Source: Cercozoa sp. M6MM (lineage: Eukaryota; Protista; Endomyxa: Ascetosporea). Taken from it: DNA of 64,000 bases. Where the stretch lies: assembly GCA_040357565.1 (NCBI GenBank), contig JBDODJ010000005.1; one strand, given 5' to 3'. Position numbers and translations under genes: made by a program. Below, one piece after another: positions 1 through 43,823 of the stretch (position 1 is the stretch's first letter; every line of letters begins with the position of its first letter). Below the pieces are notes generated by a model. The model saw nothing but the letters and a program-made list of their open reading frames with translations. It was not told the origin of the DNA and searched no databases.

Positions 1-3000
1 TTTCCGTTGCATCGACACAGTTGAACTTGCTGCTCGCGGATACGGACATGACCGTGTCTGCGGAAACACTTCCGCAAGATTTGCGCAACGGCGTTGTGCT
101 CGCCTACGTCGTGGGCAAACTGCTCGGCAAATCTCTGGTGCAGCATCTTCAGTTCCTTCCTCAATTTTTATTCTTTCGAGGGTACGGTGCTTGAGCAGAA
201 TGCGAGTATGAAACCGCGCAACAAGTTTCAGGAAATCGAAACCTTGCAAAGTGCGCTGCACGCCATTGAAAAGGCAACAAAGATGCCACTCATCAACATT
301 GATGCCACCACGATTCGCCAAGGCAGTGTCAAGCTCGTGCTCGGTCTTGTCTGGCAGATTGTGCTCAAGTTCCAAGTCGAGCAGGCTAGTCAAAGCACGA
401 CCAATTGCAGCGTCGAGGCAGGTAACCTGTTCAGTTATACGTTTTTATACGAGTAAGCAGAAGCCAAATCTTCCAGGTGCCTCGCCAGCCCCGATGGATG
501 AAGACAATCCCTTCGCCGAGTCGAGTGCGTTTCTCTCCTTCTGCTGTTGCCACAGTTCGCTCTGAGCTGAGTTGTCTTGTAGCCAACACGTCGCTCAATC
601 GCGACCGAGCTCCTCGTATCCTTTTCACAATCTTCTGACAGAGGAAGGTAATCTTTGTATGTGCGAGCACAGAAAAGAGCGCACTGGAGACGGGGATGGA
701 GGCACGTTTGCAGGCTATGGGCCACTGGGCTCGTCGACAGACGCAGCAGCACCATGTGCCAGTGCAACTGTCCGAGAACAACGACGTCATTGCCGATCTG
801 CAGCGAGGCCGACTGCTACCTGCGCTGGTGGCTTCCTTCGGCGATGAGGAGGCTCGCGAGTTACTCATGCCTTTCGTGGTATCCTTCATATAAGGCTTGT
901 CCCTTAAAGTAACATTTGACACTGTCCATTCCTGGCGCAGATAAACGACGATCTCAGCAGCATCGAGCGTATTTCGGCGGCGTTGCAGGTGGCCGAGCAA
1001 CGCTTCGGCATTCCACAGCTGCTAGACGCCGAACTCACCTCCACGACACCTGGTACATTTCACAATTGTCCTGCTGCCTCCATTGTGCCTTGTGTGTATC
1101 GGTAAATTCGGTACACTCAGACAAGATCTCTGCGTTGACTTACTTGAGTCTGCTCAAGATCTGCGCCGACAAGCGTGAGCAGCTCTTTTCTGTTTCGGTA
1201 TCAATCCAGTCCTCCCTCCCTGTCGAAACATTGTTATGTGAATCCTGCTTCTCTGCAGCAAGACGATGCATTGGGCAACGCACTGTTGCGTGCACAAGAG
1301 GAGGCACTCGCCAAGTACACCTGACCCTTGTTTTGTGTTACGCCCTATATATTTTATTCTACAGGTCACCTTCGCCGTCGACGCCGCCCGAAGTTCGCGA
1401 GGAGCGTCGCCAGCGCCAGCTCGAGCTCGAGCAGAAGAAGCAAGAGATGGAGGAGTTGGAGAAACGCCTCAAAGTATGTTGTTTTGCGCTGTAAACCCTC
1501 TACTGTCGAACTGACTGACTTTTGACTCCCCGCCTGTCTGCAGGAGAGAGAACGCACAATGGCCGAGCAGTGGCGACAGATCAACCATCTGCAGGACCAG
1601 TTGCTCGAACAGCAAAAGTCGGCTTTACCTGAGCCGGAGCCGGAGCCGGAACCTAAACCTCCTGTCGGTACTGACACATACTTGACCACTGTGTACTTTA
1701 CTCGTTGCTACTGACTGTGCCATGACAATACAGCTGGCATGCAAATGTCGGTGGGACCGCCGCCTCCTCCTCAGGTACCACTCAATATCATGACTTTAAC
1801 TGTACTGCAGACCGTGACTTAATTTAGGCCAATGACTGCTTTGATGTTCTGGGCGAGTCTTTGCAGAACAGTTTCTCGCCGCCGCAGTCGGTCAACGCGT
1901 CGGCACGCGACATTTCCGACATGCTTTTCGACGTACCTCGTCTCTCTTTTTCTTCTGCATGCTTTCATTTTGTGCTCTTGTGTTTCGCCCACAGAATGAT
2001 GACGATGATGATGTACACATTGTTTCAGTTGAGACACAGCGATATCATGCGTGCACGTTGTTCTGTGCATTGATCTAAATGCAGTGGTTCACTCCGCCTC
2101 AAACCGCAACGGCCGTGACCAACAGTTCGATCAATCTGACAGGTACTTCTTTATCTCCCCTTACGACCTTCCTCCAGGAAATACGTCAATACGCATTAGC
2201 ACTGACGATTCCGACCAAGGAGGAAGAGGAGCTGTCGCCAATTATGTCTTCTCCTGAGCCAGGTACCAACACTGCCACTACCCACCACTTGAAGGGAGAC
2301 TGCAGTACTAGAGGGGTATCGTGTAGCACCGATGGTGGCACCGGAGGAACTCTTCGCCACCAACAAGCCCTCTACGGTAGGTCCAAAGAGACATCCGCCA
2401 GGATAATACTGTGCTGTCACGTTTGGGACCGCTTACAGGGCAACATCCCGTGCGTGCGATTCAAAGTCGGCCAGAGCAAGTTGCAGAAACTGAGTCCGTA
2501 CGACATCACCGTGCAGTGGGTATAATTTACACTTGTGATGCCTCATATGTATGTAGTGAGTCTTAAATTTACATATTTAAATCCTGTAGACTGGCCCTTT
2601 CGGTGGTCCGAACCACGCGCGACCAGAGCCGGTGACAGTACCAACACGACACATCAACAGCGACCTGCGCGTCTCGATTTTCGTTGCTCGTCTCGGGCTC
2701 TACCAGGTAAGTTGACTTTGTTGGACTGACTCGACTCGACACTGCAGGGGTTGACTTGATCGCACAGGTGCGTGTCTTTATCGGACGCAAGGAGACGAAA
2801 GTGTCGCCCTTCTACTTCCTCATGCGCGAACACCCGCAAACCCACAAGGTGGGTCAATGCTTTTACCCCTCCGTACCACTACACAAGAGTGCATAATGGC
2901 GCAGGTGTCGATGCGTTGGGTCACCCCCGACAGCAAGCAGGCCAACATGTTCCGCGAGGTGCGCAAGGGTCGCTTGCGTGGTACTCACTTAGTAAGTAGT

Positions 3001-4146
3001 CATGTCTACACTGTCTAGTCTCTGTGTGTTGCTGGCAGTGTCACGCAACACCTCACAGAAGCAGATCGAAAAGTGGCGTCGCTTCCAAGCCGGTGCCATG
3101 GCGCACGCGCAGCGAGAGGTAGAGTTTGATGTTTGTGCTTTTCCTTCGAGCTTTGATGTTCTCAGGTCCACTTGGCGCGCATGCGAACTGACCGCGGACG
3201 CGAGGAGATGGAAGAGACCATGCGGCGCTTCAAGTACTTCCTCTATCAATATGTGGTGGTGGATATGCAAAAATATTGGTCTGAACGAAGGAGCATGGCA
3301 AAGGAGGGCACCATGGTTACAAGACTTGCTCGCAGGTACGCTTCACTCTCCGGATATCTAGTAGTACCGACTGGGTAAACCAGTATGTACTTAGTCCGTT
3401 TGAGTCCGACACACGGTGCGGTTTGAGTCTGGTACGCTCCGACAACTGTGTCCCGTGTCGATAGTGTGGTTCAATGTGTCTGCGCAGGAAGGCAGCACTA
3501 CGAAAAACTACGCTCTGTGCTGGGGCAGCTCCAAGAAGCAGGTACAACAGACTTCTAAAATGAAGCCGCATGAGATTGACTGGAATTGTTTGAACTGGTA
3601 GAGTTTGCCGCTGTCTGCACTGGAGTGCATCGGACTCGGCCGTTGTCACTCGCGCAGGTGCCGTAGAGTTCTCCCTCAGCTAGTATATATATATATATAT
3701 ATATATATTTACAATGATGCATGCTGTCTCTTTCCTAAAACAGTCGGCGCGTGCGGAAGCTTAGCGAGCCAGTGCAATCGTTGTGTCTCTCGGTATCTCA
3801 CATCCTCCACATACATGTGATTCGACCGAGTCAGAATCTCTTGACCACCTGGACTGGCAGCTACTGCTGGGCGGCGGCACACGCAAATCGATCGACATCG
3901 CTTTCCCGATCGTTTCCGAGCGGTACTGTTCCTCTCCAGAGTCTCTTTGAGAGTGGTAATTTTTTGCAGCAACGAGTGGGCGACGGGTCTCGCCGAAATC
4001 ACCGGCGTTCCAGTTCTGCAGGAAGACGACGATCTCCTCTCTGCCTCAAACACGGAGGTATTCTTGATCACATGATAACATGTGCCCTCCCTCATATGCC
4101 TACTATTCAGAACAAGGGGAAGGGCCGCAAGCCGAGGCGCAAGTGA
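1..4146 (+). CDS. 5'-truncated multi-exon cytoskeletal protein: calponin-homology domain(s), coiled coil, Pro-rich linker, filamin/ABP280 repeat, C-terminal PH-like domain
   Basis: CH motifs DLRNGVVLAYVVGKL and LINIDATTIRQGSVKLVLGLVWQIVLKFQV; filamin-like YDITVQW..TGP..LGLYQVRVFIGRKETKVSPF; PH-like EGTMVTRLARR..ALCWGSSKK..SLCLSLLL..SIDIAF..NEWATGL. GT-AG exons join in frame; the end position is approximate. Confidence 0.7.
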
Positions 4147-4411
4147 ACTCTCAGCAAGTAAAACACTCGCCTCGCTCAAAACTCGCTCGATCCTGCCGTG
4201 CTCAACCATCGCACTTTTATTTGTTGTTCGGAAAGAAGCCTACGCTAAATTTACAACGGTTCAGTTCGGTTCGGTCTGGTCGGATTCGGCTTGTTCCCTT
4301 CTGTCTTGCGAGAACGCAATTGGTAAGACGAGAGGTGTTGCTCGCTTCTTAAACTCAACTGAACGGAGCGTAACGACGCGCCGCAAGCCACCAACGCAAA
4401 GCAACAATGAA

Positions 4412-7400
4412 TCACTCTATTTTCTGGTGCTCCGTGTCGGTCTGAGGCGACTGCGAGTGTGGCGGGGGCTGTTCTCCCTCGGCATTACCGTTAGCTACAG
4501 GCAGCGAGAAAACCGAAGCGAGACAGGCGCAGAAGCAAGGCATCACACCAGCCAACAAGAGTAGGTGCGGCGGCCATTGCAGGAGCAGTCGTGTCTCCAG
4601 CAAACTTGGCCACACATGAATACCCAGTGTGTAGTGCTGCATTATGTGCTCATTCGCAGAAGTGCAAGTACAATGAGGAGAGGTACGTAAAGCAAGACAG
4701 CATTGAGCGGATTGAGAAGTGTCATCAAGAGTGTCTTGGCCAGTGCCGACACCGTGGAGGCAGAAGGCGTACCAGCCAGGATCACGAGTTGCATCCACAG
4801 CAGCACTGCCACCTGTCCAGTTTGCGAGCAGCGTTAACAGTCAAGGAAGTTGGCAGGAGCAAACAATTATGTACCGACAGGAACGGCAGTGCGAAGGCGG
4901 CGCCGATGCAAAGAAGGAAAAGCGGCACGACGAACAGTGGTCGCGTGAGATGGAAGCAGAAATCTCCCCTACTCTCATTGTTTCGGTGTAATTGTCTGTT
5001 TCAACGAACAAATATGCATGTACCTCCTTGCAATACGTATGCACGAGACAACAGCGAGCGGAGCGACAACACACAGTACAAGTATCCTCACGTAGCCTAC
5101 ATAATCTCATATGCAATATAAACAAGCACACTCTGTATAGACACAAAAAGGAGACACCTCGGAAGAGCCATGCCACCAACGACGGCGCAAAAGTCAGCAC
5201 AGTGAAACGCAGCGCCGATTCGAAAGTTTGGGGCGTCTTTTTCGCCAGTCTGCCCAGCACAGAACAAGTCAAAACAACCCCACCCTGTGTACAGCAAGGC
5301 TACCGCAGGTAGTTGAGAATTCCGAAGAGTCCAACAGGTGCAATGCAGAAAGCGACCACTGGCAGGTACTTGCTCTGCTCCAGGAAGCCGTAAGGCGACA
5401 CCTGTGCCAACACACACTCTCTCTCTCTCTCTCCGTGAGAGTCAACGCAAAGCAACACAAGGAAGAGGCACCATGACGTAGAAGAAGTGCGAGTGGTGCA
5501 GACGCTCGATGAGGTTGCTCACGGCGCGCGTCATACCGAGCAGCACGCGACCCAGGTCGTTCACGCTGCTTCGCGTGTTTTGCTGCGACTGGCGCTGCTT
5601 GCACAGACATATTGAGTATTGATTCCCAGCGAGGGGGGGGGGGTGAACTATACCTCAGACAGACGGATGCCTCGCAGCGTGAGTGCATCGACTCCGCGTT
5701 TCCGCAGCGCCGAGTGGAAACTGTCGCTCTGCGCGAAACGGTTCGTCAGCGTGTCACTCACGAAACGGAATGGTGTGCAGAAGCGCTGCCCATTCAACAC
5801 ACGCAGACACACATACAGACTGACCACCAAGGAAGGAAGGCACACCTCGAGCTCACGCGTGAGTCGCACAGCGTGCTGCACCATGCGGTACGCACTGATG
5901 CCGGTGGCCTCGTCAAACCACCTGCCTGCAAGGAGTGCTGACACTTACTTCTGATGGTGTGAACACACTAAACGCTGCGTACCAAAAGAGGTGGCGTAGA
6001 AGGAGTAAACAAGGTGAGGAATGTCGACATTGTAGGCAGCTTTGAGTGCGTGCTCCAACGACACATTGTCGGCGTGACACAGCACAGCGTCCTCGCGGTG
6101 CGACACGATAATGTTACCTCGCGACAAGGTCTGACACACAGGAAGTACAAAGATATATACCTGTGCACACATAGGCACACTGAGATATATCCTGCTTACA
6201 TCCAAGGCAGACACAAGATCAAGGTTGGGTAGCTGCGCACCCTCTGCCACCAGGTCCATGCTCAGCGTGTCAAACGCGCCTGTTTGCATCACGTAGACTT
6301 CAGGCATAAGTATAGCGAATTAAATACATACGGTACCAATGGGGGGTCTTTCCTGCCAGTAGGAATGAGTCAAATCAGCAATGTCGATCTCCTCTTCGTC
6401 ACCGTCACTATGCCTGCGGGTTTCGAGGTAGTGCTCCACCGAGTTTTGTGGCACCACTGGTGGCAACTCGAAAGCGACACCGGCCACCAGTGCTCCGGCA
6501 AACTCACTCGAGTCCTCGTACCCACCGAGCCACTTGTCGAACCTGCCGGGGATAGGTTAGGACAAAGAAGAAAGCAGCGAACAACAAGACAGCACTACCG
6601 CTGGTACGCCGAGAGTTCCTCATCGTGCAACGCGATCACAAAAACTACGTTCTTTGAGAGCCAGCGCACCTGCGAGAGTTGCGTCAGAATCGCGCCTCCC
6701 AACGCCGCCTGTGCCAAAATGTCCAAGTTGTCTTAGTTTCAAGTTGCGCGCTGCCGAATTAAAACACCGAAAGCAGAAAAGCAGAAAGGAAGGCACGAAG
6801 GCACCAAAAAACGGGGCGGAAGAAAGAAGCTACCGAAGTGATGCGAGGAAAGCGAGCTTCCGTCAGGTGACTCATCTCCATTGGCGGCTCTGGATTCCTA
6901 CACTATCGTTGTATCATTTAAAACACTCGTTCAGTGCAAGTTTGATACCTCAATTTTCGGTCAAGAGTCGGATGCGAGAAACGCCACTCATCCGCGCGGA
7001 CGCCGGTCACCAGAGCAAACGCTTCCTCGCCATCGATGTTGTCAGTCAGCAACGTGGCAACGCAGACGCCTGCACCTTTGTTGGAGGTGTTTGAAGCCTC
7101 TGCAGACTTTGGTTCATGGTATGAAACACTGAGTCCGTGCGATGCCAGCACCGTGCAGATTGAAGCAATCGTGCTTTCTCCTCCCCTGATCGACACTTCA
7201 GCACGGATCTGCCGGTCAATCTCCTCGGCCACTTCGACTGAATCGCTCAGGAACGGTGGAGGTGCTCCTGATGGCAACACTGCGTTCTCGTCGACATAGA
7301 CACGCCGCGTCTGGTCGCACAACAGCATGTACACGAACCAGAGCGTAGCCAACATTCCTGCCACTGACAACAGTTGCAACAGACATTGCTGTCGTCGCCA

Positions 7401-38639: not shown

Positions 38640-40240
38640 TCAGAAACAAAACCGACACCCACCTGACTCACTGGCAGTCTTGCCGGTGTGGGACTTGAAG
38701 GAAAATTAGTAGTGCCGGATGTATCGCTGATGCGTGGGAGTGGGGAGCGGTGATGCCAAATCGAGTTGAAGAAAGTACTCGTCGACCACTGCACTGCCGT
38801 ACTTTTTTCGCAGACTGACAACGTAGAAAGCAACTTGACAATATTGAGCCTGCATGGTCAAAGATGTGAGAAAGTACCTTTTCACGCTGCTGCGTGTGAG
38901 ATTGCGCAATTCCTCGGCCATTGCTTTTCGAAGCTAAACTCACTCAAAAATGCCCGTGCGGTAACACCAAAAGCAACAACTAGGCATTATCCCGATCGTG
39001 TTAAATGTACCTGCGCTAACGCAGCACGTGCTCGGTCGCCTTTTCGCGTCGTTTTTGGGACGTCGGGGGCTCCTCCTGCATGAACAACGTGGTTGTATCC
39101 GAGATATAACCTAGGTGCCAGAGCACCACTGTTCAACTGATCGAGAAAGGGAGCAGTACCAGCAAGTCCGACGTCGTGAGTGTCAGCTTCGATACTGGCG
39201 CTGCAGGTATTGAACAATGGAACGATAGGTGCTCTCGTCGTCTCCTCCAGGCGCCGTTGTGTCCTCCTCTTCGCTTGTGACGTCCGTTGGACAGGGCTGG
39301 CACCATGACGAGCCTTGTCGTCCGGGGTTTCGTTCCAAAGCTTCTGGCCACTGATACTGTCTGGAAGATCAGCGTTCGGAAAGTCAAGGTCTGGAAATGC
39401 AGCGTCGGAAAGACCGGTATTAGGTCGCTGTTCATGATGTGTTTCCTGCTTTGACTCAAGTTTCGACTCAAGTTTCAAAGTGTCGATTTCAAACTGGACT
39501 GGATTATCTTGACGGTTTGAAGCAAATTTTGACGTGTCTGTGGACTCCTTTTCTTTGTGCAGATACGTGTATTGCAGACGTCGCTTTGCCGGTTCTTTTG
39601 GCGTGAGTCGGCTCACGAAGTACAGCACTATAAGACGAGTAAAACTCTAACAGGCAAGTGCCAAAGTATCAGCTCAACATAAAACTGCTGGTACAGATGG
39701 TGAAGACCAAGACAACAACGGCAACGCTGTGGACCGACTGCAGCATCGTTTTCCTGCTGATTCAATAATACAATCCCTGGCACGTGCCAAACCAACAGTG
39801 CAGGCCGCGATCAGCCGCAGACAACACTCCCAAATTCCGACAGAACAGCTAGACTGTGCTTGGTAGTAGCACGGCGATGCACCATCAAGCACTCCAAAGC
39901 AATCATTAGAAGTGCAACAACGCCAAAAAGCCAAAACGGTGTCGATAGCCAATCGGACCTTTTCTGTATTGTTCATTCGAATGGTCACACCGTGAAAACG
40001 GCTTTTGACTTGCAATCCCGTGGGACTTTGTTGCTTTGTAGGCGGCGTGAGACTGCACAGTGGAACAAAACAGTAAAGTCCTCGCGCCCGCTGACGAAGG
40101 CAGTCAGTCTGAGTGGCAACAAAAACGATTTTTCTGACACTGCACACTTCCAGAGCTGCTTGCGCAAGCAAGTTTACTCACTGAGCTCACTCTTGGCAGT
40201 ACGCCTGTGTGGCGTTGTGTCTGGGAATTGAGTCAGAGCA
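38640..40240 (-). CDS. hypothetical protein
   Basis: Minus-strand ORFs 39674-40171, 38987-39628 and 38706-38921 with plausible GT-AG joins. Confidence 0.4.
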
Positions 40241-40273: not shown

Positions 40274-43200
40274 ATGTTGGCATGGTGCACGACGCTGCTG
40301 CTGCTGCAGCTCGCCCTGCGACCGGTAGACGCGATATATAAATGCCTCCGTGAATGCAAGCCTAGATGGGACGTCGCGAAGCTGTCGCCGCTGACGGTAA
40401 AGCAGTCTCACCTGTCGAGTCGCACCCAAGCGTCCCGGTGTATTTATCTCTGTGTGTGTTTGTGTGGCAGGCGCCAAAGTTCCTTTTGGACGGCAGCGAA
40501 GAAGGCAGCGACGAGTACGAAACGAGCAAACAAACGCCGAGCATTGCGGTGCCTGGAGATTCTTCGAAGAAGCAGGAGCGTGCCGTGCTGCACGCGGTGG
40601 GACTCACGGGTAGTCCGATTGTGTGCACCTCGATGCTGGCTGTGTTTTCGCTGAGACCGGGTGGCAACTTTTCCTTTGTACCCCATTCCCTTCCTCCTCT
40701 GGAGACATGTGTGCGAGGACGTGCGCGTGTCGTATGCGCAGCATGCCTGCATGTGGTGTGTGTGTGTGTGGAAGTAGACAACAGGCTGCAGGATGTTGCA
40801 CTACCTGTGCGGGCACTGCGAGGGCGGCGCGTGCGCACGCGACCTATGGCTCGGTGCAGAAGACGTCGACCCGCCGCCACGTGAGTTGGTTTCGGACGGC
40901 AAGTGCAACTACCGTCGCGGCACCATCACCACCGAGTACGATCCTTCCTTCTCCTGGCCCACTATAATTCCCTGTAGCTACTTACGCCTCTTGTCTGCAG
41001 CAAGAACAAGACAGTGGGCGCGCACATCATCGAACAAAAGATCGAGATCCTAGGACATGTGTCGGAGGAGAGGCACGAGTTATTCGACCCGTTTGAGCCG
41101 GTCGAAGTCGAGGACAGTTGGACCACGCCGATGGACGCTTCCTTCGCTGGCGTGGTTTGTTTCGCTTTCTTGGCACCTGCCCTCCCTCAGATTTGCCTCC
41201 TCACTCCTGTTTTTATACTTTGGATGCGTGCATGCGCGTGTGTATGTATGTGTGTGTGTGTGTGTGTGTAGTGGTGGAGCGAGGACGATACCGACACCGA
41301 AGCCGAGAGTATAGGCGACTCGATCGCCGCCATGGCCAACGACGACGCCGTTTTGGTGATCGGTTTTGTTCCGGCCATGGCTGCCGACCTCCGTGTGGCC
41401 AGGACGCACAACGTAGCATTTGCTTCTTTTCTTTGTACCCCTCTTATACATTTGTTCAATGTGACCACGCAGTCATCCTTCTACCTCAACGACTACTCCA
41501 TGTCAGACCCTCTCGAATACAATGGTACCCTCCAGCACCTGTACACCCTTTCCGCTACCTGTACACCCTTTTACTCCAACGCTGCTTCCCGCAGACTGGC
41601 GGAGAGTGGACGCGGCCGGAACCCTGCCGCTGAGCGCACTCGCTCCAAAAGTGTTGCTCAACGATTCCTTCGCCGACATAGAGGACGCTCTGGGCAACGG
41701 CGACGATATCTTCTTGCGGTATGTTTCTGTCCTTCTGTTACCCGTGTCAGCCTCTGCTCTATCCCCCATCATACCCGTGCCTGTATTAGACTCCGCGTGC
41801 GTGACGGTCTGGCCTCTGAACACGTTGTCGTGGGCTGTCGCAACAGCGAGACCTATGAGATGGTACACTCTTGCATGACACAAGTACACGCGTGTTTCCG
41901 ATGTGCACACTCGAACGGCGAATGTATGTGTGAAGGTGCCGCTAAGCAATGCGACGCTGCGCAAGGTGCCTGAGTTTGAGGGCGACACGCGCGTATGCAG
42001 CAAGCACGTGAACAACGTGCACTATGCGCCGGCACACGCGGCCTATGACCTCTCCTTTGGCCTCGTGGCGTATGCCGTACTGTTGCGCGAGGAGGTGCTG
42101 CGTCGGTGCCGTCCCGACGTGGCCGGCCAGGACAGAGGTGTCCCGGCAGACGACGGCGAGTACACGGTGGCCAGCCACCATCTGCCTGCCGACGGCGACA
42201 TCAGGGAAGCCCCCACCCAGGAGGGCGCTGCGGTGCGAGTGCAACTTTTTGCGAGTCTGGCAGGGTCGCCCGTGACCGACAGGAAGATCACGACGCTCGA
42301 ATTCGCCGTCGACGTAGCCTACCGGTCCTCGCATACACCCGAGCAGGACGACAGCAGCGTCGACAGCGGCGATGCCTTCGTGGTCTCCGTGTCGGTCACG
42401 CTGGTTCTCTTCGCTGCCGCCGGCGCTCTGTTCGCGGCGCACGTGGTGCGACGGCGCCAACAGCAGCACAAGAAGGCCACCGGGACCGCAGACGACACCA
42501 GCGACCTGGAACTCGCCTCTGGCTCCAGCACTCCCGACCACGAGGCAGCCGCTGCGACGGCTACCACGGCGACACCGGTGCTGCCGGTTGCTGTGCCGAC
42601 GCCTGCGCCTGCTGTGACTGGCACCGTCGTGGGCGCTGCCGCTGCCGAGCATTTCCTCGTGGACTCTGAGACACTGGCGCGACAGGTACACCGTTTTATT
42701 CCTCTTACCCCCCCCCCCCCATGTGTCCGACTGTAGCGGCGGCGACAACGGCCTGGTCGACGACCGTCGGAGAAACCGATGCGCTACGCGTGTCACCTGT
42801 GCGAGCGAGCGGTATCCAGCTCCTCCTGTCAGTGGGAGGGGTGTCTATCTATGTGTGGGGTGTACCTATCTTGGTAGTTCGCACGGCGGTACAACCTTAA
42901 GCGGCACCTCAAAACGCACTTGACAACGCGACCGTGGATGTGCGCACGCCACGGTTGCCAGCGGCGCTTCGCTGATCGCAGCAGCTGCCGCGCGCACATG
43001 CTCACGTGCCGTGACGGTACCCTCTTTTTGCCCCGTGGATGTGGGTCCGCCTCAGTGCGCATGTACTCTACCTACAACTCCATGTCCCTGCAGGCAATGA
43101 GGACGTCGACGACAACGACGCGGCGCCCGTACGCGTGAAGGCGACGGACGGCGCCTCGGTAGAGGCCACGGCGGCCACCGAGCAGTTGTTTCAGCGTGCC

Positions 43201-43823
43201 ATTGCCTACAGCGAGCAACAGCTGCGACAACGGCAACAACAAAAGCAGCAGCAGCAACAACAGCAGCAGTCGCAGCAGCAGCATCAACTTCAATTGCAAC
43301 AACAGAGACAGCAGCAACTTCAGCAACAGCAGAAGAGTCTGCACACACAGTCATCCAGCCACCACAGTCACCATAGTCACCGGATTCTTAGCAACACCAG
43401 CAACAACAACAACAACAACAACAGTTTCTCCAACAACAGTCACGTCATGCACGAACTCATCAGTGGCATGCTCAGCAGCAACTACGAACTGTCCTCGTCG
43501 TTGTCGACCATGCTGCGCACCCCGCCGTCGCAGCCGCAGCGTTTTGTGCCGCGCACGAGCTTCGTGCCTTTGCTGCCTTCCCAGGTACTGCCCCTGTGCT
43601 CCCTATGTGTGTCTTTGCCTGTGGGATCTCGGTCCTGTTGTAGCTGCTTCCAAAGCCAACGGACGAATTGTCTTCGCTGGCCCTGTATGGCTCCGTGGAT
43701 AACGCTGTGTCGGAGTCGTTCGCAGCGTCGCCGTCGCCCGTACACGCAACTCCACGCACTGACCATTCACTGAACGACGACTACCCATTTACCACGTCCC
43801 GGCCATCGATGTCCGCCTTTTAG
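40274..43823 (+). CDS. type I membrane protein with cytoplasmic C2H2/C2HC zinc fingers and a polyQ/N tract (candidate membrane-tethered transcription factor)
   Basis: Signal peptide MLAWCTTLLLLQLALRPVDA; TM AFVVSVSVTLVLFAAAGALFAAHVV+RRR (~42374-42457); spliced YACHLCERA|FARRYNLKRHLKTH-LTTRP-WMCARHGCQRRFADRSSCRAHMLTC; all joins GT-AG and in frame. Confidence 0.8.

Follow-up and report, generated by a model that had tools for sequence, protein, structure and literature searches.

A putative type I membrane glycoprotein with a C2H2 zinc-finger tail, possibly a membrane-held transcription factor, in the marine amoeba Lemnamoeba sinaloensis

Locus MHM6MM_000563 of Cercozoa sp. M6MM lies at positions 40274-43823 of a 64,000-nucleotide stretch of contig JBDODJ010000005.1 (assembly GCA_040357565.1), hereafter called the window, and appears to encode within a single polypeptide a signal peptide, a large ectodomain, a transmembrane (TM) helix and a pair of zinc fingers. 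The explanation that we favour, which we consider evenly poised between right and wrong, is that this is one gene for a type I membrane glycoprotein carrying a latent C2H2 transcription factor as its cytosolic tail, from where the factor would be released by proteolysis. A putative cleavable signal peptide would direct an acidic region of some 470 residues, in which Cys and sequons occur, into the lumen or out of the cell, while the TM helix and the adjoining segment RRRQQQHKK would hold the C-terminal 373 residues in the cytosol, the factor being kept inactive at the membrane. An event at the ectodomain would then lead to cleavage in or beside the membrane, for which a rhomboid, a juxtamembrane protease and the proteasome are the candidates, and the released tail would enter the nucleus and regulate genes.

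M6MM (taxid 1215613) is an amphizoic marine amoeba of the Apofilosa (Rhizaria) with a draft genome of 23.7 Mb (PMC11069148), and was later named Lemnamoeba sinaloensis (PMC13746701). The genome is very compact: the median distance between genes is 162-176 nt (PMC11069148, PMC13746701), and genes contain on average ~13 introns with a mean length of 82 bp, 99.5% of which have GT/AG borders (PMC13746701). Annotation was carried out with the train, predict and update steps of funannotate and a stranded mRNA library (PMC11069148, PMC13746701). The window corresponds to draft contig C5:124001-188000 and is eukaryotic in character, with a G+C content of 53% and many short GT-AG introns. In our analysis exons were searched singly and joined locally to check frame, hydropathy and composition, while whole-protein searches used the three GenBank isoforms of the locus, P0001 to P0003.

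The interval 40274-43823 coincides exactly with the coding sequence of MHM6MM_000563, which is recorded as "MAG: hypothetical protein [Cercozoa sp. M6MM]", and a search with its largest exon returns one protein, at 100% identity, the three isoforms forming one cluster. Isoform P0003 (MES1907448.1) has 888 amino acids, 13 exons and 12 GT-AG introns, and is the same as the gene model of the first-pass annotation. Our independent chaining of exons also runs from the ATG at 40274 to the TAG at 43821-43823 in one open frame, with 12 GT-AG introns of 51-175 nt, and the earlier claim that canonical splicing gives a single open frame is thereby reproduced twice. The two chains differ at the junction of exons 2 and 3 (40609/40785 in ours versus 40677/40778 in P0003, both in frame) and by one codon at the 3' end of exon 4, which in P0003 ends at 41154. 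With the exon 2/3 junction of our chain 25 residues are lost, Cys93 and the NFS sequon among them, and the number of Cys that remain in the ectodomain is even (10). The other two isoforms, of 773 and 776 amino acids, have their start at an internal Met (ATG 40793, MLHYLCGHC), downstream of the signal peptide, which is thus absent from them; the longer one, P0001, also retains intron 12 (43585-43643) and ends in a different tail, rich in Cys and Arg. There are no runs of N in the gene, and hence no assembly gap inside it. As a side observation, (GT)n microsatellites are found inside introns 2 and 4 (40750-40770 and 41240-41270), in keeping with the simple-repeat load reported for this genome (PMC13746701).

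The features that would place this protein in a membrane are all contained in the first nine exons. From the letters alone the first-pass annotation had described a signal peptide, an ectodomain with the Cys motifs CLREC and CGHCEGGAC and several N-glycosylation sequons, and a TM helix with an RRR stop-transfer in exon 41936-42685; each of these is recovered in P0003. The putative signal peptide MLAWCTTLLLLQLALRPVDA is present at the N-terminus as proposed, with V at -3 and A at -1, and its h-region, LAWCTTLLLLQLAL, has a Kyte-Doolittle value of about 1.9, both by inspection. The ectodomain that follows, of ~470 residues, is acidic (77 D/E versus 44 K/R) and includes 11 Cys, both Cys motifs and five sequons (NFS, NKT, NSS, NDS and NAT). 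The TM helix, at residues 491-515, appears as a single peak of hydropathy with a 19-residue Kyte-Doolittle mean of 2.38. There are no K/R and four D/E in the 16 residues that precede it, and five K/R within the nine residues that directly follow (RRRQQQHKK); by the positive-inside rule the predicted topology is that of a type I single-pass protein with the fingers facing the cytosol. Pfam TM_ErbB1 matches the helix weakly, with an E-value of 0.011-0.014 that is under the cut-off. The C-terminal 373 residues include a cytosolic linker of 79 residues, which is of low complexity and has an in-frame coding score of +19 versus -3 bits, and the fingers start about 95 residues C-terminal to the TM helix.

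The zinc fingers are encoded by exons 10 and 11, whose limits (42737-42811 and 42878-43016) agree with those first read. Joining the two exons produces finger 1 with the exact C-x2-C-x12-H-x3-H spacing, and since this spacing is restored only by removal of intron 42812-42877, the reality of this intron is strongly supported. Finger 1 (P0003 residues 611-633) scores 26.7 bits against a cut-off of 25.2 for Pfam zf-C2H2 (PF00096), and thus passes the Pfam check that had been proposed for the spliced protein; Pfam on the single exons recovers just half of it. Its helix positions -1, 2, 3 and 6 are occupied by R, Y, N and R. Finger 2 follows after a linker of seven residues with the spacing C-x4-C-x12-H-x3-C (C2HC); it has D, S and A at helix positions -1, 3 and 6 and a Cys at a core position. 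By itself finger 2 is under the Pfam cut-offs, and exon 11 alone gives both zf-C2H2 and C2HC matches. In a search of the PDB all matches are confined to residues about 600-670 and all are DNA-binding tandem fingers (E-values of 1e-11 to 8e-6), among them Aart, PRDM9, ZNF410, GLI, YY1, CTCF, WT1 and the two-finger ADR1, in line with the likeness to DNA-binding C2H2 pairs that had been suggested. A protein search with residues 580-670 gave a fish zinc-finger protein as its sole match (E-value of 2e-4), and no close relative of similar length. In the order of the chain, the linker is followed by an Arg-rich patch, finger 1, finger 2, an acidic patch, a polyglutamine (polyQ) and a polyasparagine (polyN) tract; the Q/H/N-rich region is found from 43094, where it had been placed. 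An AlphaFold2 model has one long helix at residues 687-750, with block means of the predicted local distance difference test (pLDDT) of up to 87-93 around residues 700-739.

Several points weigh against the favoured explanation, and we set them out here alongside the alternatives on which they bear; the first is that the excess of TM helices that we see upstream of other finger genes, described below, is only suggestive. Others concern the gene model. Two of the three annotated isoforms lack the signal peptide, and the fusion of the membrane protein to the fingers is put together from annotation, splice signals and analogy. A separate finger gene with the start MRYACHLC could still exist, in which case the locus would be an annotation artefact made of two genes merged by overlapping transcripts: a membrane glycoprotein that retains intron 9 and ends at the TAG at 42734-42736, and a small finger protein that starts at the ATG at 42779. 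Such merging is conceivable in a genome with intergenic distances as short as those given above, for which the annotators needed jaccard clipping against fused transcripts. Moreover, intron 9 is in frame and its acceptor TAG is its sole stop, the ATG at 42779 immediately precedes finger 1, and the 14 codons between the acceptor and this ATG show no coding signal or bias.

Despite these points we judge the existence of two genes to be improbable. The gap between the TAG at 42734-42736 and the next ATG would be only 42 nt, well short of the intergenic median. Exon 9 has no in-frame ATG and is therefore unable to start a protein. The signals of intron 9, on which the fusion hinges, are all good: its donor, GTACAC, is of the commonest type in this gene, and is followed by a branch-like CTTAC, a run of C and the TAG acceptor; in a leave-one-out position weight matrix the donor scores 7.3 and the acceptor 7.5 bits, which places both in the 95th-99th percentile, the top few percent, of the GT/AG sites of the window. 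Its in-frame coding score is -6, as against +19 in the linker upstream. Furthermore, the junctions 42685/42737 and 42811/42878 are both spliced in 3/3 RNA-informed GenBank isoforms, in agreement with the receptor-to-finger layout in one polypeptide that was originally read from the sequence. Retention of the last intron in a gene model is something that only transcript data suggest, and from the workings of the pipeline the combination in P0001 of such an intron with a downstream start points to a transcript assembly that would span exon 3 to the end of the gene, with intron 9 spliced. Finally, the order of TM helix and fingers appears to recur in two other finger genes. All considered, the locus is very probably a single fused gene. 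Retention of intron 9, if it occurs, would yield a fingerless membrane protein that ends 16 residues on, which could be either a decoy form or the first half of the two-gene alternative.

A second group of points concerns the fingers, which number only two, with atypical contact residues in finger 2. Specific DNA binding takes two fingers at the least, finger 2 is of the C2HC kind with D, S and A at -1, 3 and 6 and a Cys in its core, and C2H2 fingers with roles other than DNA binding are well known. The locus could then encode one membrane protein whose tail is not a transcription factor, but a cytosolic adaptor or scaffold that binds RNA, protein or lipid by means of its fingers and never enters the nucleus. 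In a genome so rich in simple repeats, polyQ and polyN tracts are common and are not necessarily the sign of an activation domain. We regard this possibility as quite unlikely: finger 1 has R, N and R at the classic base-contacting positions and a canonical fold signature that exceeds the Pfam cut-off, DNA-bound tandem fingers, the two-finger ADR1 among them, make up all of the best PDB matches, and the pair is directly preceded by an Arg-rich patch and followed by acidic and polyQ regions.

The ectodomain, in turn, is an orphan without a detectable relative or a confident fold. Residues 21-490 of P0003 match only themselves among 5.8 billion proteins, as does exon 9 among 1.84 billion representatives, and a 250-residue query from exon 9 aimed at fragments of transcript assemblies found no match. 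No paralogue of residues 1-500 was detected in the genome of this organism, and Pfam scans of the single exons and of P0003 revealed no ectodomain family. In the ESM Atlas there is no usable neighbour, and the Atlas model of the protein has a pLDDT of 0.32; AlphaFold2 run without an alignment gives a mean pLDDT of 37.7, with values <50 over residues 28-506.

The last points concern the protease. The intramembrane proteases that fit type I substrates are rhomboids and gamma-secretase. Rhomboid homologues are present in the genome on contigs C875, C530 and C395, and a signal peptide peptidase (SPP) on contig C1; rhomboid cleavage usually releases the outer part of a substrate, not its cytosolic part. 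No presenilin and no site-2 protease (S2P) was detected in an exon-wise search of this intron-rich draft genome, a result from which nothing can be concluded because genes with ~13 introns match poorly when searched exon by exon. The lack of such matches would suit a protein that remains whole and permanently tethered in the endoplasmic reticulum (ER) and inner nuclear membrane, its ectodomain lying in the perinuclear space and its fingers on chromatin, where it would anchor or silence particular loci at the nuclear periphery without being cleaved. The same architecture fits this arrangement, which requires neither gamma-secretase nor S2P. Yeast Heh1 and Heh2 are carried to the inner nuclear membrane by a basic patch and a long disordered linker, which the segments following the TM helix of MHM6MM_000563 resemble, and HB-EGF is reportedly a case in which a type I membrane fragment was documented at the inner nuclear membrane. 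However, the linker of 79 residues is shorter than those of Heh1/2, an ectodomain of 470 residues with sequons and 11 Cys is more like a domain of the cell surface or the secretory pathway, and soluble activators are where polyQ and acidic tracts are typically found, so that a permanent tether appears unlikely to us. The positions of all the features that enter into this discussion are collected in Table 1.

Table 1. Positions in the window of the exons and other features of MHM6MM_000563 (residue numbers refer to isoform P0003)
Feature	Positions	Strand	Description
Exon 1	40274-40396	+	Start codon, signal peptide residues 1-20 (40274-40333), CLREC; no earlier in-frame ATG downstream of the stop at 40229-40231; N-terminus identical to P0003
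Exon 2	40471-40677	+	Ectodomain; P0003 chain
Exon 3	40778-40935	+	Ectodomain; P0003 chain
Exon 4	41001-41154	+	Ectodomain; P0003 chain
Exon 5	41272-41412	+	Ectodomain; P0003 chain
Exon 6	41473-41524	+	Ectodomain; P0003 chain
Exon 7	41595-41718	+	Ectodomain; P0003 chain
Exon 8	41790-41862	+	Ectodomain; P0003 chain
Exon 9	41936-42685	+	Final 146 ectodomain residues, TM helix, Ala/Thr/Pro-rich cytosolic linker (predicted topology)
TM helix	42374-42448 (residues 491-515)	+	Followed by stop-transfer RRRQQQHKK at 42449-42475
Intron 9	42686-42736	+	51 nt, phase 0; sole in-frame stop is the acceptor TAG
Exon 10	42737-42811	+	Arg-rich patch RRRQRPGRR, resembling a nuclear localization signal (42737-42763); first half of finger 1 from 42785
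Intron 10	42812-42877	+	66 nt; divides finger 1 after C-x2-C-ERA
Exon 11	42878-43016	+	Second half of finger 1 (42878-42919); finger 2 (42935-43009)
Exon 12	43094-43584	+	Acidic patch, polyQ (about 43217-43336), His/Ser and polyN tracts
Exon 13	43644-43823	+	Ser/Pro-rich C-terminal tail; stop TAG at 43821-43823

The genome contains about 17 C2H2 loci, of which those closest to MHM6MM_000563 are found on contigs C129, C23 and C63. The gene on C63 (minus strand; L004 2758-3958) is preceded by about 470 nt of non-coding DNA, and its first 27 residues form a TM helix (Kyte-Doolittle 2.82, from residue 4) followed by RRQQR; further downstream are a 62-nt GT-AG intron, an acidic exon of 99 residues and three or more C2H2 fingers, the first of which is interrupted by an intron filled with a 12-nt simple repeat and becomes complete when the exons are joined. 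The gene on C129 (plus strand; L002 2857-5416) has a first exon of 1338 nt with one or more TM helices (Kyte-Doolittle 2.62), basic residues and a long acidic region, and further on has a polyN/K tract, a KKRK patch and four fingers, of which two are split by introns and restored by joining the exons. One pair of these fingers is 53% identical to the pair of MHM6MM_000563, and the unusual finger CQRRF-x-D-[RK]-S-x-C-x-x-H is common to both. The exon chains of C63 and C129 are both free of stops. At the C23 locus (L003) four fingers share one open frame with an N-terminus that is rich in Gly and only weakly hydrophobic (Kyte-Doolittle about 1.35). With a background rate of 0.037 TM-like helices with basic residues per kb per strand, about one TM helix would be expected within the 1.5 kb upstream of the 17 finger loci, and three were seen.

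A candidate on contig C113 (L007 about 1500-5040, minus strand) was set aside as a TM-finger fusion: its upstream gene has a signal peptide, about six TM helices and a terminal KRRSKKRRKR patch, and a finger gene lies ~1 kb downstream on the same strand, but the ~700 nt between them hold no coherent frame and we judged the two genes to be probably separate. Two further observations are recorded here for completeness. The introns of the C129 gene are packed with TTTACCCC-like repeats, and at the finger locus on C28 (L011 about 1601-5453, plus strand) a crude and unreliable exon chain starts with MGQGQS, which resembles an N-myristoylation site.

Since two or more further finger genes seem to have a TM anchor, placed in the same linear order, the attachment of C2H2 factors to membranes may be habitual in this lineage, with MHM6MM_000563 as the version with a large ectodomain. 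A further-reading proposal, which we put forward tentatively and hold to be possible but on the doubtful side, is that Lemnamoeba possesses a group of membrane-anchored C2H2 factors peculiar to its lineage, and that MHM6MM_000563 is a true receptor and transcription factor in one polypeptide, in which a signal at the ectodomain triggers cleavage and the tail goes to the nucleus. The apparent recurrence of TM-anchored finger genes hints at a lineage-specific form of transcription control in the supergroup Rhizaria, where functional data are all but absent. Since L. sinaloensis is culturable and a chromosome-level genome has been published, the idea is testable (PMC13746701).

These proposals can be considered in the light of the membrane-bound regulators that have been described. 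To our knowledge the eukaryotic membrane-tethered transcription factors are of type II or hairpin topology and sense conditions within the ER, while Notch and the other type I receptors whose signalling relies on cleavage have no DNA-binding domain. Like SREBP, ATF6/CREB3L, NAC-TM, bZIP28 and MYRF, the protein studied here would have a cytosol-facing DNA-binding domain that is held by a TM helix and is expected to be released by proteolysis. In those factors, however, there is no signal peptide, and the DNA-binding domain, of the bHLH, bZIP, NAC or Ndt80 type, is N-terminal to the TM helix (type II or hairpin), whereas the order here is putative signal peptide, 470-residue ectodomain, TM helix and C2H2 fingers, in a genome in which our exon-wise search did not detect S2P. 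The likeness to Notch would consist of the type I topology, the large ectodomain and, as we propose, an intracellular domain that becomes nuclear after cleavage. Notch, by contrast, has EGF and LNR repeats outside, RAM and ankyrin regions inside and no DNA-binding domain of its own, and is dependent on gamma-secretase; Pfam finds no EGF, LNR, RAM or ankyrin match in P0003 (E-values up to 1), and presenilin was likewise not detected.

Other systems share part of the layout. In NFE2L1 (Nrf1/TCF11) the TM helix also comes first and the DNA-binding domain is C-terminal, an order that closely resembles that of the C63 gene; Nrf1 is a bZIP protein with an N-terminal anchor and no ectodomain, whose body is first lumenal and is then retrotranslocated and cut by DDI2. 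The yeast SPS-Stp1/Stp2 pathway and the Rim101/PacC pathway also employ latent C2H2 factors that are activated by endoproteolysis by way of a membrane sensor. Sensor, protease and soluble factor are separate in those pathways, while here a sensor-like ectodomain and the factor would be parts of one polypeptide.

A class of membrane-bound C2H2 proteins has already been predicted in plants, where an in-silico census lists 70 TM-bearing C2H2 factors in 14 species, some with N-terminal TM helices (PMC5694209). These are predictions, and as far as we read that study no signal peptide with a large ectodomain and no functional tests are reported for them (PMC5694209). On the strength of that census, only the type I, receptor-like form would be unusual in MHM6MM_000563, to which the plant proteins showed no sequence relationship in our protein searches. 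Neither "zinc finger" nor "transcription factor" occurs in the text of the paper on the L. sinaloensis genome (PMC13746701). Our literature searches found no description of a layout of signal peptide, ectodomain, TM helix and C2H2 fingers, and with no homologue of the ectodomain or of the TM exon among 1.84 and 5.8 billion proteins, the earlier remark that no described family has this layout still holds within these searches.

A parallel in overall design is found in bacteria. In ToxR and CadC an outside sensor, one TM helix and a DNA-binding domain are combined in one chain, as would be the case here; the DNA-binding domain of these regulators is an N-terminal winged helix-turn-helix, and they bind DNA while still in the membrane, which is possible only where there is no nuclear envelope. 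A type I protein with a C2H2 tail of its own would, if our explanation is right, link an outside signal to a eukaryotic promoter by the shortest route possible, and the design would have arisen outside animals, plants and fungi. If the receptor reading also proved true, MHM6MM_000563 would be a eukaryotic counterpart of the bacterial one-component transmembrane regulators, built on a type I topology, for which there is no known precedent among membrane-tethered factors.

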